Source: Setoptus koraiensis | Taxonomy: Eukaryota > Animalia > Arthropoda | Length of the DNA: 64,000 nucleotides | Direction of reading: 5' to 3' | Assembly: GCA_048013815.1 (NCBI GenBank) | Contig: CM106585.1 | Location: forward strand, 16,492,001 to 16,556,000 | In this document: one piece after another, positions 19,571 through 61,583 of the stretch | How the letters are laid out: each line of letters begins with the position of its first letter | How positions within the stretch are numbered: position 1 is the stretch's first letter | Position numbers and translations under genes: made by a program | The notes under the pieces: generated by a model | Databases searched by the model: none | Told to the model about the DNA's origin: nothing | What the model saw: the letters and a program-made list of their open reading frames with translations, nothing else

Positions 19571-20242
19571 ACCTATCTTGTTCGAACGCTGCCGCTGTGC
19601 GTTAGGCGAGGTTGCGCGCGCGCACTTAATCCACGAACAACAAGCACACATCAACTTGTGCTGGGAGGGGGCAGCACCACCAACAAACAACGCACTCAAC
19701 GAGCGTTGCGCTCATCGGCCGCAACACGGCGCTGGCGTGCACGCAAAAGCCCGCACTGAGAGCATTCTATAACAGGCACATGACGCTGCGGCCTGTCGCC
19801 CAAGCCCAAACAGTGCCCTATGTGCAATAAGCGCGCTGCCGCCTGGCGCACAAAACCAGCGTGAAATGTGTCGAGCCGGGTGCGAGCGAGGTCACAACAA
19901 TGCGCCCACCCAGCGCACACCTAGCACTAGTCGCGAGTCGCGAGTGCATACCAAGTCCTCGATAGGTATTCGATCATTTGAACTTTGGACGTCGATCGCA
20001 ACAGACACCAATTAAACAACCAATCAAATCAACAACAACAACAACAACAAACAAACATCCAATCGACGACAAACAAACATCCTATCAACAACAACAAGCA
20101 GCCAACCCTGTGAGAGCCAGTCGCCGTTCACTACATATGTATGTGTGCATACATCGCCACCATAATAATACAACAATCACTATTATAATTAAATTCATAT
20201 CGGCATACATTATAATTTAATAATAACTTGATCACCCCTTAA

Positions 20243-21478
<1,236 letters not shown>

Positions 21479-21528
21479 TAATTGGTAATAATAATAATAA
21501 TAATAATATACTTAAACATATATTTATA

Positions 21529-27100: not shown

Positions 27101-27197
27101 CGCAGCAATAATTCAATCTGGCAATTGGTCGAGGATAAGTTGGCGAACGATGGCAACATTTTATACCGCCTGTTGTTCGCTTCTTTTTTGGCTCTCG

Positions 27198-27229
<32 letters not shown>

Positions 27230-30200: not shown

Positions 30201-31383
30201 TCGCTCAACAGACAGACCACAATAACAACGGCGGTGTCAGGCTAAAAACGAAAGCGTGAGTACCATTGCAGCGCCAAAATGCCAATTCACATGGGCATTT
30301 GAGTTGATATTTTGCGTTGCATCTCTCAAATAGGCGTGTGCGTCGCTGTTTTGCATCGCCGTTTTGCATCGCTGTTGCTGAATGCGTGCGTGCTCGCATC
30401 AAAATGAAATAAATTTGCATGCTTGCATGCAGCCGGCCGGCCAGCAGTCATCGAGTGCGTTTGGCATCAATGCGTTGATGCGCACAAACAGTCGTGAACG
30501 GTTGCGAACGGATTGGTGAAATGCGTCCACATTTCGGCCATGTTGCCGCTATGTAGATCGCTCAACAACAAATGTGTATCACTCACACAGCGTAACAATC
30601 ATGCAAATGAGCTCATCGAGGCTCGCTCTTGATGACCGCTCTTGACGGGCGATTATCGACATGCCGAGCGTGTGATACGACAAGCCGGCCATGCCAAGCT
30701 CCATCGCCGGTCGGTCGGCCGGCCGGCCAGCAACGGCCAAGGAGAGCGAGCGAGATTAATTATTATGCAAATGCGCTCACATATACAGATACAATTGAGC
30801 GGCGACGAAGGGAGCGATGAGAGTCTCTCTCGCTAATGGTATTATTATTGGATTGCTATATGCCATTCGCATGCGGCATGTACAGTATACATGCAGCAGT
30901 GTATGTGCACATTGTTCACTCTCCTACCTCTGCCATTAACTAACCAAAATTTATACTTTTTATATTTATATTATGTATGTTGCTGTTATTTTGCACCGAT
31001 CGGCTCACATCCGATTTGGCCGAAAAATGTGTGGCCAATTTGCGCGCACTGTGCAATGCTGCATTTGCATACATGCACCATGTTTATACCTGTTGTTGCT
31101 GTTGTCGATAATGTTAATGTTGTTTTAATAACAATGCACCGATGCCAACAACGTGCCGATACTGCGATTAAACTTTGAATTATCTGGCTTTTCATATTTT
31201 ATTTAATTAACTGGCCACAACAATGGTATCACTACTGTTATCACTGCGTTATAACTGGCCCGAGTGGCAACAATCGCACGCCCACCGCTAATTGGCCCAT
31301 CGACCCAACAACAACAACAATCCACCGACGCCAACACCGACCTGCCCATTTGGGTGAAAATGGCGCCATTACCACGCCATTAG

Positions 31384-32795
31384 TCATTCGAGCCGCTCGA
31401 GTCCTCCGAGTCATTCGAGCCGCTCGAATCCTCCGAGTCATTCGAGCCATTCGAGCCACTCGAGCCACTCGAGCCACTCGAGCAACAACAGTAACTGTAA
31501 TAATAGCAACAATCGCAGTGCCACCAATGACTCGCAACAATCTGTCCAGCGTGAGCGCAACGGCAGTGACCAGTCATCTGGCAAGCTCGCTTGCGCTAAC
31601 TGCAACGGTAATGAGGGCGCTGCAACAATAACTAATAAACAACAAAGGCTATCAACAACGGCAGCAGCAGCAGCCGTGTTGTTGGATGCGCCGAGCGTCG
31701 ACAATGAGCAAGACATAAAGTCGTCAGAACAGTCAGCCATTCATGAAGTGGAACAGCAACAACAACAGCAACAACAGCAGCAGCAACAGCAGCAGCGAGC
31801 CTGTAGGGCGACCATCAAGAACAAAGTAGGAGAAGAACAACGCCGAGAGAATAGCTGCGAATCGGAGGGCGGGCTCGTTAATAAGCTCGCTACCTGTAAC
31901 AATCAACGAGGGGCTAACAGTGTCGGCCGACAGCAGCACCGGCCAGCCGAGCATCAGATAAGACGACAAACGAATAGAGATTATCATACTTTACGCGATG
32001 GCAGCGCAAGATTAAACACAAGCCAACCAGCGGCAACAACAGCAACATTAGTTAGTCATGGAACGCAACGGCAGCGCCAGCAACAAGTTGTAGAAGATCC
32101 CAGTTGTGATGCAACAGCCACCGAAAGGCAACAGCAAATTGATAGCTCTAATAAAGTTGATTGTGGTCAAGTTGAACAGCAGCAGCAGCACACGGCGCTA
32201 GCAAGACAAGACAATTCCAGCCGAAAAGACTTGTGCTTCTCAGGCGCAGTCTCGCCAGTAGCGGCCGATATAGCGGCGCCTGATGCAGCGGCCAGCGCAA
32301 ACGGTATCAGTGTTATGGAGGCCGACAGGCAAAATGAGGAGGCTGTTGCTGTCATGGCCGGCACAACTAACTCACCTGTGAGTGTCAGTGAGCATGATGC
32401 AGCAATTATTTCTGTTGTAAATCAAGAACAACAACAAAGCAACGGCAAACAATTTGAAGAGTTGCCAGTTGCGCAATCGCATGGCGAGACAGTGACGCAA
32501 CACATAGAGCGAGCCTCTTCATTTGGCTTCATTAGCAACATGCACTCATCGGCCGCAACAACGGCAGCGACAGCAACAACGACAGCGACAACAACAACAA
32601 CGACACCAACAGCGGCCAGTGTTGTCGGCGATGCTCACGACGAGAGCGAAACGAGCCACGCACCGTCAACAACGACAGTCAATGTCCACACTCAAGCCAA
32701 TAAATTAGCGCATGTGTATAGAATAGAAGATGACCAAGCCACCAACGACCACGACAAACACCAACAACAAACAACAGCCAGCGGAACAGCAACAG
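31384..32795 (+). CDS. Putative upstream low-complexity coding exon of the LIM-domain gene
   Basis: The frame is open from 31358 to 32803 and is Q/S/T/A-rich. It ends at a strong acag|gtgagt donor (intron from 32796, phase 1), compatible with the phase-1 acceptor at 35629. The 5' boundary is uncertain. Confidence 0.4.
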
Positions 32796-35629
32796 GTGAG
32801 TGAATAAGTGTGTGTCCGCGCGTCATTATCGTGCGCGCACGTCAATGCACAGTTGTGCAATATGCAATTGGTTGCGACTGTGTGCCTGGTGTCAGTGCCG
32901 CACTGTCGACGCCAGCTTGTGTCATAACTGTCATAACTGTCATGCCATATGATATATGACTCATATGTCTCATATCGCTCGACCGTCATATTATGAGTCG
33001 ATATGATTGTGAGTCAAGTTGCGAGCCCAGTTACAATTAGCCAGCTGTAACATTGATATTTTATTATTATTTGAATCGCTGTGGCAAACAATTAACAAGA
33101 CAGCGAGCCAACAAGAGCGAGTGAGCGACACAATGGACAGTCTCGGCGTTCACGCTGACCCCATGCCGATGGTGTGTCAATAGTGTGGTGATTGCGCGTT
33201 TATTGTGTGCCCTTTTATTTTACCTTACTCTATCGTGTGCCGGATAATTGCTGATTGTTGACTGTGTTAATAGTGATTGACGCAATCGTTAATAGTGATT
33301 GTGAGTGGTCAACAATGAATTGCAAACGAGTGCCCTCGTTTTAGATTCTTGGCGACAGTCGACAGGATGTGGGGGCCAGTGTCACAGCGTGTTGAAGCGA
33401 ATCGATTTGATCGCGGTCGGTCGGTGATCGTCGGTGATATAAATTATAAAATTTATTTTTATTAAAAGTTTGGCCAGGCGATCGGCAGGCACAGTCGATT
33501 GGCGCTTGTCAGATCAGATGCGTCTCACAATGATATCATATGATGCAATATATAATAATATCATGGCAGCACACAATTGTTAATTATGCAATCATGAGAT
33601 TGTGAGCAGCGGCCACAACTGGCCGCTGATAATCAGTGACTGATTTGTATTGTGTTATTCTGTTATTCTGTTGTGATGCAATATGGTTAGTCATTTGAAT
33701 TGTCATAAATTACAAATTGCAATTGGCAACTCGCCACTTGCCACTTGCCTCTGACAATGGCCACTTGCCAGTTGTGCCAGGCAACTGTTTGTGTGCAACG
33801 AAATGAAATATCTGCTGTTTATATGCAATTGAGCCGTCGCCATTCGCGAGCTACCAATTGCTGGCATTTGTGTGTGTCTCGGCAAGTCGAAGGTCGTCGA
33901 AGGGCTGGCACGCCGAGCAAACCTGTACTGACAACAGTGACGAGCAACAAGTGACGGCTCGTCATGTTGAGAATATGTTAATAATAAATTATTATTATCA
34001 TTATTGCAACGCGTTAACAATAATCGCCTTGCAGCTGTTGATGGCGAGCTGCCCGTTGGCGTACATAAATATAAATAAATATGTATGCTGCCTGGCTGCT
34101 AATCATTCAGTCAGAGTCAGCTGTCCGGCGGGCTAATGGGACACGAGCGCTGGCACGGGCTCGCGTTTCAACAAACCGACAGACCGAGACAGACGATCCC
34201 GCCTGAGCAGCCCGAGCGGCCCAAGCGGTCCGATCAAGCGGAGCGGTCCGATCAGCCCGAGCGGCCCGCGATTTGTGGCCGGCGATTTGTGAGGCTGGCG
34301 CGGCGAGCGGCCGTTTAGCGGCCAGTTGGCCGGCTCGGCCGACCGGCCGACCGGCTCGGCGAGTGTGCGTGCGGCGGGCGTGTTAGCAAGCCAGGAGTTG
34401 CCGTCGGACGTGTGAACAAATATCGCTGAATAAAGTTGCGTCTGTCGTTACATATTGACGGTTGGCACATGCAGCGAGTCGCTGCTGGCGGGCATAACAA
34501 GCGAATGGACAACGAGCGAATGGACAACGAGCGATGGGCAGGCGCGAAGCTCGCCAAGTGTGAATTGCAAAGTGCAACGAGGCCGCTCGACGCGAGATTG
34601 AGCCATTGAGTGTGAGTGCCATTGTGTGGCGACGCCAACAAAACAATCGTCAATCGGCGGTTATATCGGCCGGTATCAGGCTGGCTCTTGGCTGGCCCTC
34701 GGCTCAGGCGAGCTCGCGTGAAAGCGACAAGACGGCGCTGGCGAGACGCTGGCCAAATATTGATGCGCAGGTAAACGGGCGGCAGTGTTTGCATTTGCGC
34801 AAATCACAGCCGCTCCACTGTTGGCTGTTGTGCATTGTTGTTGTTGTTGTTGTTGTTGTAATTGTATCATCAGCGCCACCATATGCAAAGCGAGCCTGCC
34901 CAACAAACACACGAGCCGCAGCCGAGCGGCGGACAGGTGAGGCTGGCAGGCGATACTGGTTTGTCGAGGCGCGAGTGGCCGCCCAGCCGACACGCCGTTT
35001 TGTGTGAGGGCGTCTGGCCAGACGAGAGCTCGAGCGCCAGCAACAACAGCAACAACAACAGCGACAGCGACACCAGCAACAACAACAGCGACGAGCGTTT
35101 CATTGAGCGAAATCATTGGAAATCGCGCAATATTGTCAGCAAACAAGCATACCAAGGACCAGCCAGTCAGACACAATTGATGCCAACTACGAATGCGCTC
35201 GCCAGTGCGGCCAACAACTCAAAAAAGCAAGAGTGCTCTTGTTACACGTTATTGTTGTATCATGTAACCGGTCGAGTCGGGCGTCTTGCCCCTGAACGCA
35301 AACAACGAGACCAGCATGTCGCTTGGCCATCACTATTGCAACACAAAGTAACCAACCATCTTCTCTGTCTCGTATTATCGTATTCTCGTATTCTCGTATT
35401 ATCGTATTTTCGTATTTTCGTATATCATCATATCACCACACTGCCACTATTGTGTATCAATACATGCAACACATTGATATATTAATAATCACAATAATCG
35501 CAACCATCCCCCTCGAACCGCCATCCATATATATGTGCGCGCGTATTTGCATACGCCACTCATTTGCATAATTCAATGTGCGACAACCACTCAACAACCA
35601 ACAAACTGCCTATTCGAACAATTTCCCAG

Positions 35630-46097: not shown

Positions 46098-46982
46098 ATG
46101 GAAGTTATCAAAAAGAAACTGCAAGCCTACAAGAGCGACCGAGAGAACGCCATAGATAGGGCCGAACAGGCGGAACGCGAATTGCGCGAACACAAGGCCA
46201 GAGCCGACAAGGTGAGTACCAAATCTCAACCAGCTAACCACTTTAGTGTTAGTGGTTTGTTTAGTGTTTATTGTTCCAAAAACTGTAAATCATAAATCAC
46301 TGTTCATCATAAATCCTCACTAACTCCTCTCTATCCCTCGATCCCTGCACCCCAATACCACCAATAGGCCGAAGGCGAAGTGTCTGCTCTCAATAGGAGA
46401 ATTCAACTACTTGAACAAGATTTAGAGAGGTCTGAGGAGCGCCTGAAAATCGCCACACAAAAACTAGAAGAGTCCTCACATGCTGCCGACGAAAGTGAAA
46501 GAATGCGCAAGATGCTCGAGCATAGAAGCATCACCGACGAAGAGCGCATGGACGCCTTAGAAAGTTCACTCAAAGAGGCCAGAATGATGGCCGAGGACGC
46601 AGACAGAAAATATGATGAGGTTGCCAGAAAACTAGCCATGGTCGAGGCAGACTTAGAACGAGCCGAAGAACGTGCCGAAAATGCTGAAAGCAAAATCGTT
46701 AATTTAGAGGAGGAACTCAAAGTTGTTGGAAATAATCTTAAATCTCTAGAAGTGAGTGAAGAGAAGGCTGCACACAAAGAGGAACAATTTGAATTAGCTC
46801 TGAGATCCGCCACTCAACGACTTCAGGAGGCAGAAGCAAGAGCGGAATTTGCCGAGAGGTCTGTGCAAAAACTTCAAAAGGAAGTTGATCGCTTAGAGGA
46901 TGAACTAGTGAACGAACGAGAAAAATATAAGCACATATCAGATGAACTGGATCAGACATTCTCTGAGCTCACTGCCCATTGA
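46098..46982 (+). CDS. Tm: Tropomyosin (mite group-10 allergen-like), exons 46098..46211 and 46368..46982, 242 aa
   Basis: Exon 1 is [38 protein letters not shown] followed by a gtgagt donor. The acceptor is ccaatag|GCC GAA GGC GAA GTG. Exon 2 reads [26 protein letters not shown]...[13 protein letters not shown]. Confidence 0.97.
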
Positions 46983-48175: not shown

Positions 48176-50332
48176 ATGGATATTAACCGGTTCGACTCGG
48201 ACGAAACAGACGGCGATGGACAGATATTTTGCCTGCTGGAGACGGTGCCGCCAGAGCTGCTGCTCATGATCATCGGTCATCTGGACGATTTACGCGACAG
48301 ACACAATTTGGCCCAAATGTCGCCGAGATTCAGCGAGCTCGTTTACGACGCCAACAGATTTGTGGAGGAGGCCACTCTCAGTAGCGGGCTTGCCAATTGG
48401 CCAGATTGTCGGGAGCTGGAGTCAATTCTTTGCACGGTGCCCAAAATAGAGCGCCTGAACCTGGTGTCGGAATACGATCAGACGATCAGACGGTTCGGGC
48501 CGGATTCTCATTTCAGTTTGACGGACAATTGCAACCTGCTAACAACGCTCACATTGCACAAAATATCCTTTGCGCCCACGGAACTGGCCTTGCTGGTGTT
48601 GCGGTTGCCACTGTTGACGGCGCTCACACTGGAGCATGTCGAGCTAGACGATGCGGACGAGTTGAACGCCCTGTTGCCCCGACTTTGCCTCACGCTTTTG
48701 CACCTTCGCATAATAGGAATTAAACGGAGACCCTTTTGCGACCACGAGCACGATTATTTCGCACTGCGTTCGCTAGATATTAGGAGAAATCGCATCATGG
48801 ACGATATTAATATCGACGAGCAGCCATCGGCCTACTACGATGCGGCAAATTTTCTCTTGGCGTGCCAACGATTGGACAGTCTCGCCTTAACGTTGACAGA
48901 CGACAAATGGGTGCACCAGTTGACCGGCATTCTGTCCAATACCCATTTGCGTACCCTTGTTCTTGATCAATATTACGGCTGCTGGCCGGCTTCGGATATT
49001 ATTGACGTGCCAACGGTTATTAGCGGCGAGCGAGCTGAACTGCATTACGAACAAAGCGTCACTCCTACCAAACAACTGTCAGAAAATCTCACCTGCCCGA
49101 AGGCGATACGTGATCTGGAGGACAGTGTGTCGTCACTATACAATGATCATTGGCTGCCCGAGTGTCAACAACAAATATCCTCGGTACGCTGGAAACGAGA
49201 ATCTTGCCAAGGAAAACATTTTCTCACAGCGAGACTGGATCGCCACACGCTAGACAGGACATTCACAAGGAAAATCCATCACTCCAACAGGATGCAAATG
49301 ATTGAATACGACAGCAGCGGTAAAAAGTTGTGGTCGGCCGAGGGAGTGCCCATGTTGCGAATCATCAACAGCAAGCGATTTTTGTATTTGAAATTCGAGA
49401 TGGATAACGAGCAAGAATTGAAACGAGGCCGCCCAAAGTCGGGCAATTATTCTGTCATCAACAAGAGTCTACAGCTATTTTATCAGCAGTCGATGGAGAG
49501 GCTGAAAGGAAACATCAGGCGCATCGCAGGCGATACACTATTGCGCGAAATTATCCAAACAAGTTGTGGAGAGGGAAAAAATGTGTGCCACTTGGATTTT
49601 AACACGCTGAGATCGGACGACACAGGCATATGGGTCATAGAGGAGGCCTTGAAATCGGCAATATGTAATAGAGTCGCCATGTTGGTGAGTGAGCTGGACC
49701 AAGAGGCCATCGGCATACTTGACATCGTGTCATTGGCTCACTTGCACAAGACAATATCAGAAAGTGATCGGACACCTTCTACCGGTAATTCAAAAGTGTT
49801 GATATGTGCCGGCAGTGCTGGCTCGCTCGAGGCCATAGCAGAGAAACTACATGAATTAGCTGATTTGAAGGTGAAGATCTTCAGCTCGGCTGACTGTCAG
49901 TCGCACCAATCATCTTTTTCTTATTTTGACGATCTCAATGATGAAGATATTGTCGATGATGAAGATGATGATTACTACGAGAACGTCAATGTCGACAATT
50001 CAAGAATTGATACCAGAGATCTAAAAGTGGAATCGGATATGGGCATGCCTGCTGCACGAAGCATTTTCTTCGAAAACTCCATAGATGATGTTGATTGTAA
50101 CGTTATTTTATGCACTTTTCACGATGCACTCAAACTGTCGTCGTGGACCGAGTTTTTAGTTCATTCTTTCATACTGTACAGATGTAACGAGTTCAGTATG
50201 TCCGATGTGCATCTATTATTCCATTTTCTACCCAAACGTACCACAATTATGTCAGACGGTAGCGAGGTGGACGTTGTGTTCAATAGTTTCAAAAGTATGG
50301 GCTTCAAGCCGAAAAGAATAAAGGATAAATAA
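48176..50332 (+). CDS. F-box/LRR protein fused to a degenerate Upf1-like (SF1B) stalk-1B-RecA1 region, copy 1, 718 aa
   Basis: F-box LETVPPELLLMIIGHLDDLRDRHNLAQMSPRFSELV, followed by LRR-like LxxLxL repeats. Upf1-like segments are ISSVRWKR, LWSAEG, KVLICAGS (49796-49816), AEKLHELADLKV, CNVILCT and VFNSFKSMGFKPKRI. The ATG sits in a caccATGg context. Confidence 0.85.
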   Translation: MDINRFDSDETDGDGQIFCLLETVPPELLLMIIGHLDDLRDRHNLAQMSPRFSELVYDANRFVEEATLSSGLANWPDCRELESILCTVPKIERLNLVSEYDQTIRRFGPDSHFSLTDNCNLLTTLTLHKISFAPTELALLVLRLPLLTALTLEHVELDDADELNALLPRLCLTLLHLRIIGIKRRPFCDHEHDYFALRSLDIRRNRIMDDINIDEQPSAYYDAANFLLACQRLDSLALTLTDDKWVHQLTGILSNTHLRTLVLDQYYGCWPASDIIDVPTVISGERAELHYEQSVTPTKQLSENLTCPKAIRDLEDSVSSLYNDHWLPECQQQISSVRWKRESCQGKHFLTARLDRHTLDRTFTRKIHHSNRMQMIEYDSSGKKLWSAEGVPMLRIINSKRFLYLKFEMDNEQELKRGRPKSGNYSVINKSLQLFYQQSMERLKGNIRRIAGDTLLREIIQTSCGEGKNVCHLDFNTLRSDDTGIWVIEEALKSAICNRVAMLVSELDQEAIGILDIVSLAHLHKTISESDRTPSTGNSKVLICAGSAGSLEAIAEKLHELADLKVKIFSSADCQSHQSSFSYFDDLNDEDIVDDEDDDYYENVNVDNSRIDTRDLKVESDMGMPAARSIFFENSIDDVDCNVILCTFHDALKLSSWTEFLVHSFILYRCNEFSMSDVHLLFHFLPKRTTIMSDGSEVDVVFNSFKSMGFKPKRIKDK

Positions 50333-50774
50333 ATGATCGTACACCCAGCAACTGACCTGTTGACTGCTAGCGTTAGCGTTGCGGCTCGAAGTCGAACCTC
50401 GTCTCAATTTCAATCTATCTTGCCTTTCTTTTCTTTGCACGCTCATTAACGGGACTGTCAACTGGAGAAGTGCTGTAGCGAAAGTGTTGTGAGTTGGTCA
50501 GCATTGTCTGTTTGCACGGACAATGGCGCTTGTTTGTCGGGAATATCTGCTCTCCACTAGTCTGCATCACACTGTCCATTTCAATAATGACCAGCTATGA
50601 TAAAATCCCTCGATTCACCGTCTCTATCATCATCAACATACATCAAGTGAACATCAGCGATCTCGGCCAGATTTTTCTGCAAATTCGTGCAAACTCTTGT
50701 ATCAATTTCATCATTTCCATACTAGCTATTTTACGGCAGTTCCAATAGTGCCTATTACTATATATTCGCAAGCA

Positions 50775-52802
50775 ATGTCAACCAACACTTCGGTCGACCA
50801 GCACAATGAAGGATTTCTCTGGCGCCTGGAAATGCTGCCGCCAGAGCTGTTGCTCATTATCATCGATCATTTGGACGATTTACTCGATCGAACTCGCCTG
50901 GCCAAAGAGTCAGCGAAATTCAGCGAGCTCATAAACCATGCCAACAGATCTTTAGGCAAAGGGGGCATATTCAGTTGCGATATTTCGGATTCGCCATATT
51001 GTCAAGTGTTGGAGCCAATTGTTCGCAAGCTGCCCAAACTAAAACGACTCACCCTCCATTCAGAATGCTATGCCATCAGAAGATTCATGCCAGACTCATA
51101 TTTCAGTTCGTCTGACAACTGCAGCCTACTAACAGCACTCAATTTTCATGGAATATCCTTTGCAACCGATGAACTGACAATGATTGTGACCAATTGTCGC
51201 CAATTGACGACGCTCAAACTGGAAGATGTATTGCTTAGTGACCCTCGCGAACTGAGAAGCGTGTGGAAACTGGTTCAAGACAGGTTGTTGCATCTCAGCG
51301 TGATTGGGGTCATAACCGGGGGGCCCATTGCTGCCTATGGGTGCGTGTTGAGTTCGCTCGATATCAGAAGGAACCGCTATGATGAATGGAGTTATCCATT
51401 CATGGGGGGTCGTCTGTGCGGCCATGGATTTGACTTTCTCCGAAAATGTCCGCAATTGGAGAGCCTATCTGTGACAGTTAGAAAGCCGGAGGAGGTGGAG
51501 CTACTGGCTGAGACCATTACCAACAGCCTATCGCGATTGCGCACCCTCGTTCTCGATCACTACTACGGCCCGTTGCCGAATATTGACGTGCCAACAATTA
51601 TTAGCGGCGAACAAGCTGAATTGCATTATGAGAAAAGCACCGCTCATGCCAAGATATCTGAAAATGTTGCCCGTTTAAAAGCGATACGAAATTTGGAGAA
51701 TAGTGTGCCGGCAATTTACAGTACCCTTTGGTCGCAAGAATATCAACTTAATGTATCGACCGTACAATGGAAACGGAAAAGTTTCTATCATAAGGATAAG
51801 CATTGGCTCTTGGCCAGGGTAGATAACCGCACACTGGACAGCTCATACATGGGAAAAATCGACCCTCATATGCGACTGATCAAATACGGCGACGCGGAAG
51901 CTTCTGAACAGTTGTGGTCAGACGATGTAGTTGTTTCAGTGGAAAGTTTAAAAAGCGAGAGATTTTTATATTTGTACTTAGGGATGGATGAAGAGCAAAT
52001 TGGATTGAAACGCGGCCGATTGGAGAGGGTCAATTTCCGGTTGATCAACGAGCGGAAATTGCATGATCATCACACGGAGATTGACTGTCTAAAACGAAAG
52101 ATGAGACGAATTTCGGGCGATGGGTTGTTGCGCGAAATTATCGAGAAAAGTTGTGGAGACGGGCAAGTGGTGTGTAACTTGGCTTCGAAAAACACACTGA
52201 GACGACGTGAGTTCGCCAATATACACACAGTTGATGAAGCCATCAAATCGGCACTATGCAATCGAGTCACTCTCATGGTGGGTGCGCCGGGACAAGAAGC
52301 GAACAGGATAAAATCTATTGTGTCATTGGCCACTCATTTATACAACACGATACCAGAGCGTCATCGGATTCCTATTAGTTCACGAGTATTAATATGTGCA
52401 GGTAGTGCTCGTTCGCTTGAGGCCATAGCAGAGAAAATCCACGAATTGAGTGAGTTGAAGGTAGAGATATTCAGCTTTCGCACTCATAGGTGGTGTTACT
52501 TCCTTCCCAAAAGATATTTCTCCGAGGGTTTTGGTGATTGCAACGTGATTTTAGGGAATTTGGAGGAGGCACTCAAATTTTCGTCCAAGTTCGAGCTGCT
52601 GATTGATTCATTAATACTATACGAATGTAACGAGTTCAGCATGTCTGATGTTCATCTGCTGTTCCATTTATTGCCCAGGCGAACAGTACTGGTGTCTGAC
52701 AGCAGTGAGGGAGGCACTGTATTCACCAGTTTCAAGAAAATGGGCTTCGACCCAATAATGATGAATGATAAATGTTATAGCAGCGAAGAAAATAAAGAAT
52801 AA
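50775..52802 (+). CDS. F-box/LRR plus degenerate Upf1-like region, copy 2, 675 aa
   Basis: F-box LEMLPPELLLIIIDHLDD, followed by LRRs. Helicase-like segments are ALCNRVTLMVGAPG, RVLICAGS (52386-52406), AEKIHELSELKV and LILYE. Colinear with copies 1 and 3. Confidence 0.85.
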   Translation: MSTNTSVDQHNEGFLWRLEMLPPELLLIIIDHLDDLLDRTRLAKESAKFSELINHANRSLGKGGIFSCDISDSPYCQVLEPIVRKLPKLKRLTLHSECYAIRRFMPDSYFSSSDNCSLLTALNFHGISFATDELTMIVTNCRQLTTLKLEDVLLSDPRELRSVWKLVQDRLLHLSVIGVITGGPIAAYGCVLSSLDIRRNRYDEWSYPFMGGRLCGHGFDFLRKCPQLESLSVTVRKPEEVELLAETITNSLSRLRTLVLDHYYGPLPNIDVPTIISGEQAELHYEKSTAHAKISENVARLKAIRNLENSVPAIYSTLWSQEYQLNVSTVQWKRKSFYHKDKHWLLARVDNRTLDSSYMGKIDPHMRLIKYGDAEASEQLWSDDVVVSVESLKSERFLYLYLGMDEEQIGLKRGRLERVNFRLINERKLHDHHTEIDCLKRKMRRISGDGLLREIIEKSCGDGQVVCNLASKNTLRRREFANIHTVDEAIKSALCNRVTLMVGAPGQEANRIKSIVSLATHLYNTIPERHRIPISSRVLICAGSARSLEAIAEKIHELSELKVEIFSFRTHRWCYFLPKRYFSEGFGDCNVILGNLEEALKFSSKFELLIDSLILYECNEFSMSDVHLLFHLLPRRTVLVSDSSEGGTVFTSFKKMGFDPIMMNDKCYSSEENKE

Positions 52803-53180
52803 TAAAAAACCATCTAGTTGGAAAGCTGTTCGTGCGAATTAGGTAACACCCAACGACTAATTGACCGAAAATGTGGTTAAAGTTTTGATTTTATCAGAAT
52901 TGATGAAGATTTTTACATTATTGTGACAGACAGAGATGGCAGTTAATGTAAATTGTTGATCACATGCACATTCTCAAAATTACCATTAGAAATATACTGA
53001 TTAGTGGAGTAAATTTTGTTGATGCTTCTCATGTCGTTCGACGATACTTGTTATAGCAACGACAGCTTGCAATAAAAAATAAATAACCATCCAGATGGAA
53101 AGCACTATTCGCACCGATCGGGTGACATGCTCTTGCATCGGCTACCTGTCGCGGCGAACGGTCATTGGAGTCGGCTGTTG

Positions 53181-53700
53181 ACCAGCTACTGACCTGTCGA
53201 CTGCTCTCGTCAGCATGCGCCTCAACGCGGCTCGAAGTTGAACTTAGTCTCTCAATTTCGTCCGATCTCACCTTTCTTCTCTATGCACACTCACCCGCTC
53301 TGAGCACGGGTCACGGCGCATTCTCGAGTGTCGATCGGAAATGTGTGCTGGCGAAAGTGTTGTGATTTGGTCAGTTTGTGTCTGTTTGCACGGACAATGG
53401 CGCTGGTCCATTCGAAGTAGCTGCTGACCACTTGTTCGCGCCACAATGTCCAACTGAACGATGGCCAACAATGGTCAAATATTCATTCAAAGATTCATTA
53501 TCTCTATCATCATTTGCGATGACTCAGCGGTGATGATGGTCGCCAGCATACGTCAACTGAACCATGAGCATCGTTTGTCTCGTCAATGTTGTTGTGCCTG
53601 CTCTTGCAAACTGTCGCATCAATTTCATCAATTACTACCTTCATTTGTAGACTGTGTCCGGTTTAATTCAACAGCAATTCCCGTTCTCAATCGACTTCAT
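53181..53700 (+). repeat. Diverged duplicate of the intergenic/upstream segment 50344-50710 that precedes F-box copy 2
   Basis: Shared blocks in the same order include ctgacctgtNgactgct, gcggctcgaagt, gcgaaagtgttgtgaNttggtcag, tgtctgtttgcacggacaatggcgct and atcaatttcatca. Confidence 0.85.
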
Positions 53701-53949
53701 CGACCGTGTATCACTGGATATTTGTAAGCAGCCATTTTGTCAGTGAAAAACTGAGCGAAAAAAGGGGCCATGTGGACCTACGAGGAACCTTTCGACCTGC
53801 TTGTCCTGGTCGCCATCGCTGGTGTTGCTATTGTGGCTTATTTCAGCAATTTAGAGTTGGAGCAGAGAGCCGTGGCGGTGGCAGTGGCAAGCGTTCACAT
53901 TGGCGAGATGGTCAAGCGTTGGAGCCACTTGTTTGCGAGCTGTTCACAG

Positions 53950-54050
53950 TGACTCCACTCTGCAACCGGAACACAATCAAGTCCAGAGGCTCCGTTTATT
54001 GCTGACCAGTGTCGCTCGCTATCGACACTCAATTTGCACAGAATATCCCC
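53950..54050 (+). pseudogene. Remnant of a fourth F-box/LRR copy
   Basis: One frame reads LHS...DQCRSLSTLNLHRIS (54004-54048), matching DNFCKLSTLNLHRIS in copy 3. The DNA tcgacactcaatttgcacagaatatcc is near-identical to copy 3. An in-frame stop lies at 53950-53952 and there is no intact ORF. Confidence 0.7.
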
Positions 54051-54421
54051 GCAAAACACGGAATGTCCCCGGAAAATTCGCACGAACTGAGCATTGGTGT
54101 CGGTTTCGGCCAACAGGATGGATGACGGCGCTCGTTGCTGCTTGTGCGCAGCACGCACTCCGCTCACCTGAACGATGACCAGCCACGGTCCAAAGCGATG
54201 AGTCATTGTGTCCGTTATCATCGCTCATTCATCATCTGAGTCAGAGCATCGGAGTTTCGGTGCTAGTTCCGGCAAACTCTGCAAAACTAATGTGACTATT
54301 GTATCGACGGCCACATCATTTATATGCCACATCAAATCAACAAGTTGTTGTTTTACACGCGCAGGTCCGAAAATTATTCCGAAAATTAACTGACCGGTGT
54401 GCCGTCACATGCTCACGAGCA

Positions 54422-56569
54422 ATGTCGACCAACTATCGCGCCGACCGGCCCGCGGATGCCACTGGAACGAGGAGCCACGGAGGATCTTTCTGTCGCCTGC
54501 ATAGGCTGCCGCCCGAGCTGTTGCTCGTCATCATCGGTCATTTGGACGATTTGCTCGATCGGCACAATTTTGGCCAAGTTTCGGCGACTCTCAGCGAGCT
54601 CGTCCACTATGCCAACAAATTTATAGAGGGCGCCACTCTCAGTGGAGGGCTCGTGATGAGGCCAAATTGTCAAGCCAGATTGGGCCCGATTGTTGGCCGC
54701 ATGCCCAGAACAATGAGCAGCCCAATGAGGAGATTCGCGCCGGACTCACATTTGTTGTTGACGGCGGACAACTTTTGCAAATTGTCAACGCTCAATTTGC
54801 ACAGAATATCCTTTGCGCCCACGGAACTGACCAGAATTGTGACCAAGTGTCGCTTGTTGACAACGCTCAAACTCGATAATGTCGTGCTGGATGATGCTTT
54901 CGAATTGAGAAAATTGTTGCCCCTGGTCAAGGACAGCTTGTTGCATCTCACCGTGTGGGGCCTCAAAAGTCCGACGTTTCAGTATTGCCTCGCTGAGTGC
55001 GTGTTGCGTTCGCTAGATATCCGAAGGAATATCTTCGAAGCGATGTCACGGGACGAAGAATTCGACATTAATTATTCTCAAGCGCATTGCTTTCTCAGGG
55101 CATGTCCGCTATTGGAGAGCCTATCGGTGACATTGAGACATCAGATACATGTTCGGTGGCTGGCAAATGCCATTTTCAAGCGCCCGCTGCGCACCCTGGT
55201 GCTCGATCAATATTACGGCCCGATGCCCGATTTCGAGGTGCCAACAGTTGTTAGCGGAAAACAAGCCGATGTACATTTTCAACAACAAAGCGATGCCCAT
55301 GCGGCGACATCCCCGGAAATTTCGTGCTGCCCGAAAGCGATACGCGATCTAGAGAATCGCGTATTGTCAATCTACAACGAATATTGGCTGCCAGACTGTC
55401 GACAAAAAATATCGACCGTACGATGGAAGCGAATATCTCGCCCCGGCTCGTTCGAGACTGAACATTTTCTCGTGGCGCTGATAGATCGCCGGATGCTGGA
55501 CAGGTCGTTCACAAAAAAAGTGTATCCCAGCAACAAGATGCAAATGATAGAGTATGACAGCGCGGGCGGTGAGCGGTTGTGGTCAGCCATAGGAGTACCT
55601 GTGCTGGGTCTCATGGATAACAAGCGATTTTTTTATCTAGAATTCAGGATGCGAGACGAGCGAAAATTGCAAGGCTGCAACCGCCCAGAATCGGGCAATT
55701 ATTTGCTGATCAACAAGAGCTATTTGCGAATATTCCAGAGCTCCATCGACAAACTAAAACAAAACATAAAACGGACCGCCAGCGATGCGTTGCTGCGTGA
55801 AATTATCGAGAAAAGTTGCGACGGCCAAGACGCCCAAGTTGTGTGTAGCTTGCCTGCCAAAAATGCGCTGCGATCAGATGAGCAAGCCGAGCGAATACCC
55901 ATGAATGAGGCCATGAGGTCGGCGGTTTCCAATAGAGTCACTCTCATGCTGAGCGAACCGGCACCATGGTCCGTCAAGATAAACTCTATCGTGTCGTTGG
56001 CGACTTATTTATTCAAGACAATACCCGTATGCGTCCCTACTAAGCGTCCTAGTTCGAAGGTGCTGATATGTGCGGGCAGTGGTGTTCCGCTCGCGACCAT
56101 TGCCGGCAAAATTCACGGATTGAGGGAGTCGGAGGTGAGGATATTCAGCACCACACACTGTCAGCTGCAGCAATCATCTTTCTCATCTTATTGTGAGGGC
56201 CCCCTCGATGAAGATATTGCTGACAATGGGAACGGCGACGAATTTCTTCCCGATCCTGAAAATTTGGTAGTTGATGCCAGAATTTGGACAGTAAACTCAC
56301 AGGATAGTTCAGTGACAAGCGCTATTCTCTCTAGTTGTAACGTGATTTTGTGCACTTGCCGTGATGCATTCAAATTGCCATCGCTGACCGACCTGATAAT
56401 TGATTCTTTAATACTTTACAAATGTGACGAGCTCAGCCCATCTGATGTGGGTCTGCTGTTGCATTGGTCACCCAGGCGGACACTGTTGGTGTCCGAGAGT
56501 GGCGAAGAGGGCGCTGCATTCGCCAGTTTCAAGAGGATGGGCTTCGAGCCGGTCAAGCTGACACTTTGA
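54422..56569 (+). CDS. F-box/LRR plus degenerate Upf1-like region, copy 3, 715 aa
   Basis: F-box LHRLPPELLLVIIGHLDD, followed by LRRs. Helicase-like segments are ISTVRWKR, KVLICAGS (56060-56080), CNVILCT and AFASFKRMGFEPVKL. The start context gagcaATGtcgacc matches copy 2 (aagcaATGtcaacc). Confidence 0.85.
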   Translation: MSTNYRADRPADATGTRSHGGSFCRLHRLPPELLLVIIGHLDDLLDRHNFGQVSATLSELVHYANKFIEGATLSGGLVMRPNCQARLGPIVGRMPRTMSSPMRRFAPDSHLLLTADNFCKLSTLNLHRISFAPTELTRIVTKCRLLTTLKLDNVVLDDAFELRKLLPLVKDSLLHLTVWGLKSPTFQYCLAECVLRSLDIRRNIFEAMSRDEEFDINYSQAHCFLRACPLLESLSVTLRHQIHVRWLANAIFKRPLRTLVLDQYYGPMPDFEVPTVVSGKQADVHFQQQSDAHAATSPEISCCPKAIRDLENRVLSIYNEYWLPDCRQKISTVRWKRISRPGSFETEHFLVALIDRRMLDRSFTKKVYPSNKMQMIEYDSAGGERLWSAIGVPVLGLMDNKRFFYLEFRMRDERKLQGCNRPESGNYLLINKSYLRIFQSSIDKLKQNIKRTASDALLREIIEKSCDGQDAQVVCSLPAKNALRSDEQAERIPMNEAMRSAVSNRVTLMLSEPAPWSVKINSIVSLATYLFKTIPVCVPTKRPSSKVLICAGSGVPLATIAGKIHGLRESEVRIFSTTHCQLQQSSFSSYCEGPLDEDIADNGNGDEFLPDPENLVVDARIWTVNSQDSSVTSAILSSCNVILCTCRDAFKLPSLTDLIIDSLILYKCDELSPSDVGLLLHWSPRRTLLVSESGEEGAAFASFKRMGFEPVKLTL

Positions 56570-56981: not shown

Positions 56982-59900
56982 TCAAGTGATGCACCGGAAC
57001 AGAATTTTGCGGAAGGCGCGTCTAAAATCTCTATTGAAAATGGTGTAAATGATTGGATTGATGGCAGAATTGCAATAGCCCAGCCAGAATATAAATGACT
57101 CCAATCTGGGTGGTATATATTTTCTACATGAAGCACATAATGCACGTGTGACATATAATGTGAAAAATGGCAACCAGGCACAAATGAAAGCGGCCATTAT
57201 CAGACCTAATATGAGGGTGGCCCGACGTTCGCGGGCCTTGGCCAATTTCCGCTTGTGGCGTTCATTGTCCGACGCTAGATATTCCGTGTGGTGATAGGAT
57301 TGATTGTTGTTTTGATTATTGTTGTGGTGGTGGTGGTGCTGTTGTTGTTGTTGTTGTTGCTGCTGTTGCTGTTGCTGCTGTGATTGTTGCGCGTGCTGAT
57401 TGGCCTGGCCGATGGCCAGCGCGCTGTGGTGACTGGGCGACGCGGGCACCGTGCCGCTCATGTTGCTCGGGCTGCCTATCAGCAACTGGTGCTGCTGCTG
57501 CCCACATCCGGCCGCCGCTATGGTGGCCACTGCGGCTGCGGGCTGAGCCGGCTGCGGGCCGGCGTCGCTCGCCCTCGGCGGGCCATTTCCAACCGGCGTC
57601 GGGCCGCCCAAACACGCGCTCTTGTGCGGCCCGGCCACCACAATGTCGGGCAGCGGCTCCGCCGCAGCCACCTTGTTATGCTGCTGATCAGCCGCTTGCT
57701 CGTGCAGCGGGCCGCACGCGGCCGCTGACTGCTGCGCCGCTGGCTGAAAGTTGAACCTGGTCACGGGCATCGTGTTGGAGGCGTGCAACACGGTGGTTAT
57801 CGTCTCGGGTATCTTGGTCACAAGCATTTCGGTGTGCACGCTCAACGGGCTCTCCTGGTCGGGATCTAGCTGGGCGCGCAAAATGGCCGCCGCCTCGTCC
57901 AGGCGCCGTCCGCCAGGGGCGGGCCTGCCGGCGGCGGGCCCCTCGCCCAACTGACCGCCGCCGGGCGGACAGCCACCAATTTGCGCCTGCGCCTGCTGGT
58001 CCACCGAGAACGTCGATGAATTGTTGGAATTGGCCAGCGACGAGCTCGACCCGCGACACGATATGCTGCTGTCCATGGTGGCGCTCGTCTGGCTGCTCAG
58101 ATGGTGATTTGTGGTTTGCTGTCGCGCCAGCGCCCCCTGCAGCTTGTTTTGGGCGGCGGCGGTGGCGTGCTGATGCACCTGTTGAGCTGCTGCGGCGGCC
58201 GCCGCTGGTATTGCGTCACTCATGGTGAGCACAGTGGCCGCCAGGCAATCGTTTGTGTCGTTATCACCTGTCAGACGGGCCGGCGTCATGTCGCCGTGTC
58301 CGGTTGACATGCTGGCATACTGACCAATGGAGTTCCGTCTACTTTGGGCGCCCTCTTCCGCCTGGCACGAGTAACTGGTCATGTGACAGGGCAGCGTGGA
58401 CGCTGGCGCCACCCGAGCGCCCAGCACCACCGGCCCGGCATGCTGCGCCTGCACGTGCAGCGGTCCACTTCCGGTTTGCGCGGGCAAGCCTACTGAGGGC
58501 GTGATTTGTTGCATGTTGTTGCTGTTGTTGTTGTTGTTGTTGTTTTGGCTAATACTGTTGCTGCGGCTAAGATTGTTGTTGTTGTTAGTGGTGGTGACGC
58601 TAACATTTTGCATATTGTTTGTGCATATCGACGATAAACTTATGTTTCGTTGCAACTGGCCCGAGCCGCCCATCAGCTGCTTGCAGCCGCCCAGCTGGCT
58701 GCCGCCCAAGCGACCGCCGGCGCCCAGACTGCCCGAGCCCGCGTGATTGCCCGTGCCCGAGTTGCCGTCTTGCATCAGTTTGCTGTTGTTGGCCATGAGC
58801 AGCTTTTTGGCCTTGCGTGCCTGCTGCTGTTGCTGGCGTTGCTCGCGGGTGCGCGGTTGCTGCTTGTTGAGGGCCCGGCGTGCCCGTGACCGGGCGGCCA
58901 AAAATATCTTTATGTACACGAACACCATCACCATGCAGGGAATGTAAAAGGAGCCCGAGGCCGAGTACAGCACGTAGCCGACGTCGTCGCTCAGGGCGCA
59001 AGCCGGGTACTCGACGATGCCTGCGGGCGCGCCGCTGCCCGATGCCGCAGACCCGGCCAACAGGGGCTGGGCCAACGCAGCCGCTTGCGAGTACGGGTCG
59101 CCCGCGGGTGTATCACTGGTGCTGGCGGTGGGGTAGGTGTATTTGTTGTTGCGGGCACTTGTTGATGAATACGATTGCTGACCGTTCAGTACAAGCATGA
59201 AGTTCAGGTCCTCCTCGGACAGGGCGCGCCGTTGGTGCGGCCGCCCGTACCCGCCCGTGTCGTCCCGTCTGTGCCGCGTGCCCGTTTGCTGTTGGGGCCG
59301 CGACGGCAACCGGATGCGGTTGCGCGCGTTGGCGTTGTCGTCGTAGAAGGCCACATTGCTCGACTGGTAGTCGTGCCGTTGTTGTTGCTGTTGCTGCTGG
59401 ATGGCTTCGTCGGCTTGACGATTGCGCAGCGGCCCCTGCCGGCCGGGCTGCGAAACATCTTTGGTGGTGGCTGAAGTGAGTTGTGATGGCGAGTTGTGCC
59501 GCTGCTGGTCGCAGGCTGCGCCGACGGGCGGTCTCATTGGTCCGTTGCGGGCCCCGGAGGCGTGGCGCGTCCTCCTTTCGTTGGGTAGTGATAATTGTTG
59601 TTGCACGTCGGTTGTTTCGTGTGGTTGGTCCGATGTGTCCATGGATAAATCGGTCAATTGATACTGATTGGCAGAAATTGATTTAACGGCAGCTTGAGTG
59701 GCGGCTGCGGCGGCGGCGGCGGGTGTGTCATGTGGCGGCGGGTAGGCGTTTGCGGCGGTCAGCGGCTGCGGTTGCGGCAGGGGCGTCGGCGGACGCTGCC
59801 TGTGCGGCCTGCTCTGCTTGAGCAGCCGGTCGCGGGCCGCCTGACGTTGGGCCTCCTCGGCGAGCAGCTCGTCGACGCTGGGCTCTCGGTAGCCCGTTGC

Positions 59901-60716
59901 CGGCAACGGGCCCGTCGGATTTTCGGAAGATTCTTGCTGGCCGTTGGCTGGCCCGTCAAGGGACGACATGGAGTGTGTTGGTTGGTTGCTGTTTGTGGTT
60001 GTTGTGGTTGCTGTTGGTTGCTGTTGGGGTTGTGGTTGGCCGCCGCTAGAGTCAACAGTTGCTGCAAATTGTTGCAAATTGGAAGTTGTGGTGCTGGCAC
60101 TGATAGTGGCGCTGGAGGTTGTTGTTGAAGTGGCGGTGGTTGTTGTGGTTGTGGTTGCTGTTGCAGTTGCTGTTGCAGTGGAGGCCTCTAAACTGGCGGA
60201 CGTGTTCTGTTTTTTCCAACCAAACAATGGCGGCAACGACACTGCCGCCGAAAATATCCATACGCCCGCTATCATGAGGGCGCCCCGTTTTGGTGTTCGT
60301 TTCTTCAAGTAAGCCACCGCTTGCGTAATGGACCAATACCTGTCTAAACTAATTAGGCATAATGTGTTTATTGAAGCGGTGCACAACAATACGTCTAATG
60401 CTGCGTGTATATCGCACCATAATTGTCCGAACATCCAGAAGCCCATTAATTCTCGAGCTAGCGAGAATGGCATCACCACTAAACCTAATAACATATCACT
60501 AACGGCTAATGATGCTATAAACCAATTTTGCGTTGGCTTTAACGATTTCTCTGTAAAAATAGCTATACAAACCAAACAATTGCCCACAACAATTAAAAAC
60601 ATAATCACTGTTAATAGACACGCCAACAATGTTATAGATGATTGCGTATAACCGGACGGAAATGGTTCCCTTGACCAATAGGAGTGCCACCAATCGGTGA
60701 AATTTGACACTAACAT
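56982..60716 (-). CDS. Octalpha2R: alpha2-adrenergic-like octopamine receptor (class A aminergic GPCR), intronless, 1244 aa from the ATG at 60716
   Basis: PSGYT precedes TM1. Other motifs are [68 protein letters not shown], WLPFF and [24 protein letters not shown]. There is an N-glycosylation site NFT. The ORF-track start at 60749 is GTG. Confidence 0.92.
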   Translation of the reverse strand: [1244 protein letters not shown]

Positions 60717-61583
60717 TTGTAGGCTGCCAGCGCACAGGGGCGACCACACGCTGCACCACTGTTATAATGTCGATGTTGCGCCGCTTGGGGCGCTGGCGCG
60801 GTTGTTGTTGTTGCGGGCCACAGATTTGGCGTCGACAGGCGTTGACAGGTTGTGCTGTGGTTGCGGTTGTTGTTGTTGCGGTTGCGGTTGTTGCTGTTGT
60901 TGTGGCGGTTGTTGCTGTTGTCGCGGTCGTTTTCGCGGTTGTTGCTGCGGTTGCGGTTGCTGCTGCAACGACTGCTGGCGTGGTTGTTGTGGTTGTTGTC
61001 GCGACAGGTGCTGGCGTGGTTGTTGCTGTGGTTGTTGCGACGGCTGCTGGCGTGGTTGTTGCTGTGGTTGTTGCTGCTATTGTTGCGACTGGTGCGGCCG
61101 TTGTTGCCGGCGGTTGGTGGGCGCCTGCGATTGTGGCTTGTTGCTCGGTGTGACGCGCGCTGCTCGCTGCGATCCGCTCGGTCCCGGCCCAAAGCGTCTG
61201 TCTGTTGGCGTTAATTAGTGCGTGGGCGAGCGTCTGTAATGGGGTTGAGAACGGGAAAGGTGAATGAGACAATTGGCTGGCAAATAAGATGTGTGATTTG
61301 TGTTTATCTGTGATGTAACTCGCTGCTGCTTGCGTTGATTGATCAATGTCGAGTCATGTGTCGACTTGTCTGTGTCTATATCTCTCTCTCTCTAGCTCGC
61401 TGTTGCTGCTGTTGTGTAAGCGTTCAAGTGTGGTGTGTCGTTGTTGTCGTTGTCGTTGTTGTTGTTGCTGTTGCATTAGCGGCTGACATGATAATGTGTG
61501 TGTGTGTGTGTGCATGCCACCAATAAGTAGCTATCACGGTCTAGATAAACTTGTTCTCTGTCGCTGCGAGTCGCTCGACGCTC

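Follow-up and report, generated by a model that had tools for sequence, protein, structure and literature searches.

A halved UPF1-type helicase module without catalytic motifs, retained under purifying selection, in tandem F-box/leucine-rich repeat genes of an eriophyoid mite

Introduction

Why would a genome keep half of a helicase from which the catalytic residues have gone? The question is raised by three tandem genes, here called W1, W2 and W3, in a stretch of 64,000 nucleotides of the mite Setoptus koraiensis (GenBank assembly GCA_048013815.1, contig CM106585.1, positions 16,492,001 to 16,556,000 of the forward strand), which was analysed as a whole and is referred to as the window. Each gene joins an F-box and leucine-rich repeat (LRR) head to a tail resembling UPF1, a helicase of superfamily 1 (SF1). 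An earlier inspection of the sequence (the original prediction) had described this tail as a pseudo-ATPase cut at the boundary of the first RecA-like domain (RecA1), with a fold that selection maintains for binding rather than for catalysis. The published chromosome-level genome of S. koraiensis comprises two chromosomes with 5,954 genes and has a scaffold N50 of 24.53 Mb (PMC11920263).

Results

Three intact genes with a common architecture

W1 (48176..50332, 718 amino acids from ATG to stop), W2 (50775..52802, 675 amino acids) and W3 (54422..56569, 715 amino acids) lie in tandem on the + strand at about 48-57 kb of the window, each as an intact, intronless open reading frame (ORF). The ORFs are uninterrupted because eriophyoid genomes are intron-poor (PMC7738191, as quoted in PMC11879100). 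The three proteins align from end to end at 49-50% pairwise identity and are members of a family cluster that spans approximately 150 kb at C1 16.40-16.55 Mb.

In W1 the F-box comprises residues ~24-56 and the LRR region extends to residue ~277, followed by a linker, the 1B barrel with the stalk (residues ~335-454) and the dead RecA1-like domain (residues 455-718). W3 shows the same architecture, and so does W2 except at the 1C position, where W1 and W3 carry a disordered acidic insert that is deleted in W2.

Loss of the catalytic motifs

We aligned 13 truncated family members with seven intact paralogs and three UPF1 proteins by MAFFT and later extended the alignment to 37 sequences. Under the Walker A motif (motif I, GPPGTGKT), W1 reads VSELDQEAIG (49685-49714), W2 VGAPGQEANR (52278-52307) and W3 LSEPAPWSVK (55949-55978). 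Under the Walker B motif (motif II, I(I/L/V)(V/I)DE), the corresponding strings are FILYR (50168-50182), LILYE (52611-52625) and LILYK (56408-56422). All six had been quoted in the original prediction, and the alignment places them as it had assumed. Motif III, GDDNQLGPV, has become SDGSEV in W1, SDSSEG in W2 and SESGEE in W3, and about 17 residues have been deleted there. None of the 19 truncated members that were examined retains motif I, II or III, and GK[ST] occurs in none of these (0/19).

The loss does not extend to the core of the fold. The strands VLICAGS and NVIL are present in W1, W2 and W3, and strand beta1, motif Ia (SK[IV]LICA.S), the V(I/L)CCT strand and the LPRR.(I/V)LV strand are conserved at least as well as in the intact proteins. 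The Walker A columns, in contrast, have an entropy of 0.08 bits in intact relatives (98% conserved), versus 1.23 bits in the clade of the window genes and 2.22 bits in the other truncated clade. These values bear out the proposal that catalytic residues drift while the beta-sheet is kept.

Decay of the motifs is graded within the family. Truncated subfamilies L016 and L028 still contain remnants of the form IIDDC.Q and D.QL, and four full-length members (L015:2553-4955, L015:5770-8214, L017:2751-5102 and L036:1134-3527) combine a retained second RecA-like domain (RecA2) with partly dead motifs: they show GPPGTSKT and a degenerate motif III, and DDC.Q replaces DEC.Q. The catalytic glutamate is gone from some full-length members, and a full-length protein from another organism, P0124, reads GPPGTGVT and IIVNES and has lost the lysine of the P-loop. 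Since full-length members also carry dead motifs, catalytic death is not restricted to the truncated forms.

Truncation at the RecA1 border

The RecA1-like pseudo-ATPase domains of the three genes stop at nearly the same place. That of W1 (49538..50329, +) ends four residues past MGFKPKRI, that of W2 (52125..52799, +) twelve residues past MGFDPIMM and that of W3 (55790..56566, +) two residues past MGFEPVKL, where MGF.P... is aligned to the UPF1 segment LG.RPIRL directly before QYRMHP. The original prediction had all three ending within a few residues of this segment, which describes W1 and W3 well and is slightly generous for W2. It had also placed the start of the helicase-like half at 49600; the homologous region begins earlier, as it also includes the stalk and the 1B barrel. 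The cut at the RecA1 boundary itself agrees with a structure model of the W3 tail (see below), which ends at about UPF1 residue 700.

In SF1 helicases, the arginine finger and motifs IV-VI are contributed by RecA2. We searched the window by tblastn with the RecA2 domains of intact paralogs and obtained a best E value of 0.34, and none of the 19 AAA_12 (PF13087) loci of the genome lies in C1 16.40-16.55 Mb. The CH domain (PF09416) gave no Pfam match in W1-W3; its only locus genome-wide is the canonical UPF1 gene, which encodes a normal protein of 999 amino acids at C1:21.93 Mb. The absence of CH and RecA2 from the tails, as originally claimed, is confirmed by these searches. A hidden exon for RecA2 or CH, whether downstream or at another place in the window, was considered and rejected, as none was found by the tblastn, PF13087 and PF09416 searches.

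With its P-loop, Walker B acids, motif III and all of RecA2 gone, the module is neither an ATPase nor a helicase. Judged from its sequence, we regard it as established that the module of W1-W3 would be unable to bind and hydrolyse ATP or to translocate, as the term pseudo-ATPase had implied.

Homology to UPF1 and predicted fold

Searches with single copies detected the helicase ancestry poorly. Pfam AAA_11 matches were weak (W2 E 0.02, W3 E 0.0045) and covered the first third of the model only, and a search of W1 against the PDB returned noise. Because of these noise-level or sub-threshold results, family profiles were needed. A profile built from the 13 truncated members only matched yeast Nam7 (E 1.8e-16) and human UPF1 (E 1.3e-14); these alignments cover profile positions 466-690 and stop at the border of RecA1. 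Against 1.84 billion representative proteins, the same positions of this profile matched generic SF1 helicases with E values of 1e-16 to 1e-8.

Structure prediction pointed to the same relationship. The UPF1-derived module of W3 (residues 285-715; 55274..56566, +) consists in order of a stalk helix, the 1B beta-barrel, a stalk and RecA1 (1A), and its 1C position is taken by the disordered acidic insert. Its AlphaFold model, based on a 27-sequence alignment, reached a mean predicted local distance difference test score (pLDDT) of 80.4 and a predicted template modelling score (pTM) of 0.80. All top 12 Foldseek matches of this model were UPF1/Nam7 structures (E ~1e-13), and VIA-align superimposed model residues 17-431 on human UPF1 297-700 with Z scores of 19-19.7. 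The strand-loop-helix of the former P-loop was modelled with pLDDT >90, and the only long disordered stretch was the acidic insert (model residues 296-342) in the place of UPF1 1C. The model thus predicts a RecA1 fold with the Upf1-specific stalk and 1B barrel, in line with the intact RecA fold that the original prediction had expected.

A model of full-length W3 was less confident (pLDDT 71.6, pTM 0.69), and its top Foldseek matches were again UPF1, which swamped the list so that the F-box/LRR part was not listed. The charge of the module was uninformative on RNA binding: 14 of 19 truncated modules are net negative, and their spread overlaps that of intact modules. With intact parents in the genome (see below), profile matches and structure prediction combined, the homology of the W1-W3 tails to the stalk, 1B barrel and RecA1 of UPF1 is secure as a reading of sequence and models.

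The F-box and LRR head

The N-terminus of the truncated-only profile matched SKP2 with an E value of 4.6e-7, and weak matches of the LRR region (positions 46-252) included SKP2 and the plant proteins COI1, TIR1 and MAX2. The head also weakly matched a plant-type LRR Pfam family. In the model of full-length W3, residues 123-278 form repeating strand/helix units with pLDDT values of 76-92. By comparison at the family level the head is clearly homologous to the F-box/LRR region of SKP2, but W1, W2 and W3 taken singly fall short of the Pfam F-box threshold (see below). Profile matches and model alike indicate that an LRR solenoid follows the F-box. The same head occurs elsewhere in the genome without the helicase-derived tail: six or more short F-box/LRR-only paralogs (213-375 amino acids) lie in tandem at C2:9183487-9201680.

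Selection on the dead domain

If the dead domain decayed neutrally, the ratio of nonsynonymous to synonymous substitution rates (dN/dS) should approach 1. We estimated dN/dS for the RecA1-like domain in pairwise comparisons by the Nei-Gojobori and YN00 methods, with 95% intervals from codon bootstrap. Values were 0.25 (0.16-0.37) for W1-W2, 0.31 (0.17-0.44) for W1-W3 and 0.44 (0.30-0.63) for W2-W3. For W1 against its near copy L008 we obtained 0.31 (0.12-0.76), for W2 against L007 and L010 0.33-0.38 (upper bound 0.56), and W1 against W2, W3 and L005 gave 0.25-0.37. Every comparison that involved W1-W3 therefore fell within 0.25-0.45, with upper bounds of at most 0.76. In a sister subfamily, the comparison of the orthologues L020 and L019 (second organism) gave 0.20 (0.13-0.31), and intact F-box helicases gave 0.13.

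Since the ratios lie at 0.25-0.45 with intervals below 0.8, the comparisons indicate moderate purifying selection: the dead RecA1-like domain is constrained rather than neutrally decaying, though more loosely than the live enzyme. The original prediction had named a ratio near 1 across the domain as the result that would speak for neutral decay, and its view that selection keeps the domain is upheld. Loss of catalytic residues together with a predicted fold retained under purifying selection is the pattern of a pseudoenzyme.

The W2 subclade showed a different distribution of constraint. Between window positions 50775-52124 and the corresponding parts of L007, L009 and L010, the F-box, LRR and 1B regions had dN/dS values of 0.7-1.0, versus 0.33-0.39 for the RecA1-like domain; across the N-terminal 450 residues of W2 the value was ~0.8. 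The head of this subclade may be under diversifying or relaxed selection.

Intact relatives and distribution of the family

A profile of W1-W3 had 66 matches in the genome. Among the matching loci are intact full-length paralogs with GPPGTGKT and with AAA_11 and AAA_12 domains (E 1e-35 to 1e-54), some of which also have an F-box. Their closest solved structure is UPF1 (E 2.4e-73, versus 4e-42 for Sen1), and their best relatives are SF1B helicases (UPF1, SEN1 and IGHMBP2), with marginal matches to the UvrD family.

Some of these relatives depart from the common plan. L013:5464-7986 and L015:2553-4955 (C1 17.85-17.89 Mb) are full-length and UPF1-like, have no F-box and carry a hydrophobic N-terminal segment resembling a membrane anchor, so that these paralogs may be membrane-tethered helicases. 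L021:2348-5115 (C1:1.236 Mb) is an F-box/LRR helicase with GTGKT that is divided into ORFs of 620 and 280 amino acids. The division falls after motif II and ahead of the LGF.P segment, with the second ORF starting just before QYRMHP. A frameshift, an intron or a fault in the assembly could account for it.

Maximum-likelihood analysis of the shared module placed the mite family in one clade (support 100/99), sister to canonical UPF1 (94/75). The clade of the window genes sits on a long stem (1.39) in an unresolved trichotomy with the second truncated clade and the intact helicases. Forcing all truncated forms together cost 1.2 log-likelihood units (approximately unbiased test, p 0.35). A single truncation event for all of them is compatible with these data, and would be favoured by the identical stop position.

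Beyond this genome, only four of the 1.84 billion representative proteins were recovered with the full architecture (P0008 and P0121-P0123, 670-723 amino acids), all from Logan run SRR33593474, the second organism mentioned above. P0008 could be aligned to W3 from the F-box to the last residue (E 3e-25). A word-index protein search with full-length W3 returned no relatives, because the members of the family have diverged too far to share 5-mers. Full-text literature searches found no description of an F-box/LRR head combined with a helicase-derived tail, and neither F-boxes nor helicases come up in the papers on the Aculops and Setoptus genomes. A design of F-box, LRR and halved dead UPF1-type tail appears to be undescribed.

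Other genes of the window

Several animal genes surround W1-W3, an NRF-domain protein among them. A tropomyosin gene in two ORFs (a first exon of 65 and a second of 200 amino acids; 46098-46982, +) lies directly upstream of the F-box array. At 56982-60749 (-), a single ORF of 1,254 amino acids encodes a G protein-coupled receptor of the rhodopsin family (7tm_1, E 1e-62) with very long, low-complexity stretches rich in Q, T, N and A between its transmembrane segments. The region at 20000-34000 has a GC content of 0.38-0.48 with strong skews, compared with 0.52-0.62 in its flanks. A homeodomain ORF lies at 20273-21478, and two SAPS-domain ORFs at 21529-24123 (-) look like exons of one gene.

Discussion

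Our findings suggest that W1-W3 are members of an F-box/LRR family with a truncated and dead UPF1-type tail that is under selection, most likely as a non-catalytic docking module on an adaptor of an SCF (Skp1-Cul1-F-box) ubiquitin ligase; we assign this interpretation a probability of about 0.72. The family, seen here in an eriophyoid mite, would be lineage-specific and resembles SCF substrate receptors. Its last ~430 residues descend from a UPF1-like SF1B helicase, of which only the stalk, the 1B beta-barrel and RecA1/1A remain. They probably arose by truncation and catalytic death of full-length F-box/LRR/helicase genes that are still present in the genome and are themselves sister to UPF1. 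The F-box would recruit Skp1 and Cul1 for assembly into an SCF complex, and the LRR and the dead module may jointly form the end of the ligase that binds substrates or partners. Purifying selection and the predicted intact fold make a docking surface the most likely role of the dead module. What docks there could be a protein or perhaps RNA; since UPF1 grips RNA with its two RecA domains together, a protein partner seems somewhat more likely.

Several observations weigh against this interpretation. The Pfam F-box scores of W1 (21.8 bits; F-box-like E 1.6e-4), W2 (13.4 bits) and W3 (14.0 bits) are below the gathering threshold of 24.3, which paralogs L005, L016 and P0125 pass. W1-W3 are genes predicted from DNA sequence, and in the deeper pairs dS, at ~1, approaches saturation under the Nei-Gojobori method, which limits the precision of their ratios. 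Moreover, two copies in the cluster look like pseudogenes: L003 (C1:16470690-16472879, -) is a W1-like copy with an in-frame TAA, and L012 (C1:16411490-16412395) is a fragment with three TGA codons. The family is therefore turning over. The youngest duplicates (L007, L009 and L010; L018/L024; dS ~0.1) have dN/dS values of 0.75-1.5, and because the intervals include 1 these pairs cannot be distinguished from neutral. The stops and the young pairs, together with the empty word-index search, would also fit a family of neutrally decaying relics in which W1-W3 are recent pseudogenes still free of stops. We consider this improbable: three ORFs of 2.0-2.2 kb have stayed intact at ~50% identity, the constraint measured on W1-W3 is well bounded, the architecture is kept in a second organism with dN/dS of 0.16-0.20, and the fold is confidently predicted.

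Selection could also act on resemblance itself. As a decoy or dominant-negative adaptor, the dead half would mimic the intact helicases and trap what binds them, such as an antagonist from a virus or selfish element or a cofactor, for ubiquitination by the SCF; this would parallel, in an animal, the 'integrated decoys' that plant immune receptors carry. Intact and dead forms with a common F-box/LRR head do coexist in the genome, some full-length members have dead motifs too, the copies show tandem amplification, turnover and pseudogenes, and the head and 1B region of the W2 subclade, with dN/dS of ~0.8-1.0 next to a constrained RecA1-like domain, would suit such a role. The pattern equally fits any fast-evolving gene family, however, and a decoy is a special case of a binding module and not an alternative to it; we find it unlikely as the specific explanation. 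Slightly more doubtful still is the proposal that the dead half-helicase is a bait for binders of the mite's own UPF1-like helicases (a viral or transposon antagonist, or a specific ribonucleoprotein), or that the proteins are SCF receptors directed at ribonucleoproteins. Eriophyoid mites manipulate their host plants, and W1-W3 might be secreted F-box/LRR effectors that hijack the host SCF, with the helicase relic as the domain that binds the host target. The SSGP-71 effectors of the Hessian fly, a gall midge, are a precedent as F-box/LRR mimics (reviewed in PMC4617103), and the weak plant matches of the head would be in keeping with this idea. The best F-box/LRR match is nevertheless animal SKP2, and the N-termini of W1-W3, as judged by eye, are hydrophilic with no stretch resembling a signal peptide, which leaves the idea very improbable. 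Least credible is a split helicase, in which a separately encoded RecA2 completes RecA1 in trans. The two ORFs of L021 recall such an arrangement, but L021 still has GTGKT and resembles a full-length gene that was broken, no AAA_12 locus lies in or near the cluster, and a RecA2 supplied in trans could not restore catalysis to a module that has lost motif III, the Walker B acids and both the lysine and the threonine of Walker A.

A single genome holds the whole series of pseudoenzyme formation, from canonical UPF1 through full-length F-box/LRR helicases and full-length, partly dead forms to half-length dead modules. The RecA1 and 1B half of an SF1B helicase can persist as an independent selected unit, and a helicase-derived module joins the domain architectures known from F-box proteins. 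That a genome of only ~6,000 genes retains dozens of this kind suggests a lineage-specific need, perhaps in RNA surveillance, in defence or in genetic conflict.

By both sequence and structure, UPF1/Nam7 is the closest known system, and the stalk, 1B beta-barrel and RecA1 of the window genes match it in fold and order. W1-W3 differ from it in having no CH zinc-knuckle and no RecA2, in the destruction of motifs I-III, in the insert or deletion at 1C and in the N-terminal F-box and LRR; furthermore, the genome contains a separate normal UPF1. SKP2 and other FBXL proteins share the N-terminal F-box followed by an LRR solenoid, but end with the LRR, whereas W1-W3 add the helicase-derived tail. An FBXL member with a helicase-derived domain was not found in full-text literature searches, and the search of 1.84 billion proteins gave no outside relatives beyond SRR33593474.

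FBH1/FBXO18 joins an F-box and an SF1 helicase in one polypeptide and forms an SCF ligase (PMC12946210, PMC4148199). It shares the fusion of F-box and helicase module with W1-W3, but it is an active helicase of the UvrD type (SF1A) with both RecA domains and no LRR, whereas the module of W1-W3 is of the UPF1 type (SF1B), halved and dead. The intact F-box/LRR/UPF1-like paralogs of the mite are a closer functional analogue of FBH1 than W1-W3 are. Pseudohelicase scaffolds have been described in C. elegans MUT-15, yeast Utp25 and the helicase-like domain of XPF (bioRxiv 10.64898/2026.09.04.749402, PMC9539457, PMC7048804). Like the tail of W1-W3, these proteins have a helicase fold with degenerate ATP motifs that is repurposed for binding or scaffolding. 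In contrast to W1-W3, they are SF2/DEAD-box-like and retain both RecA domains, whereas the mite module would be an SF1B helicase cut down to RecA1 and 1B and fused to an E3 ubiquitin ligase adaptor.

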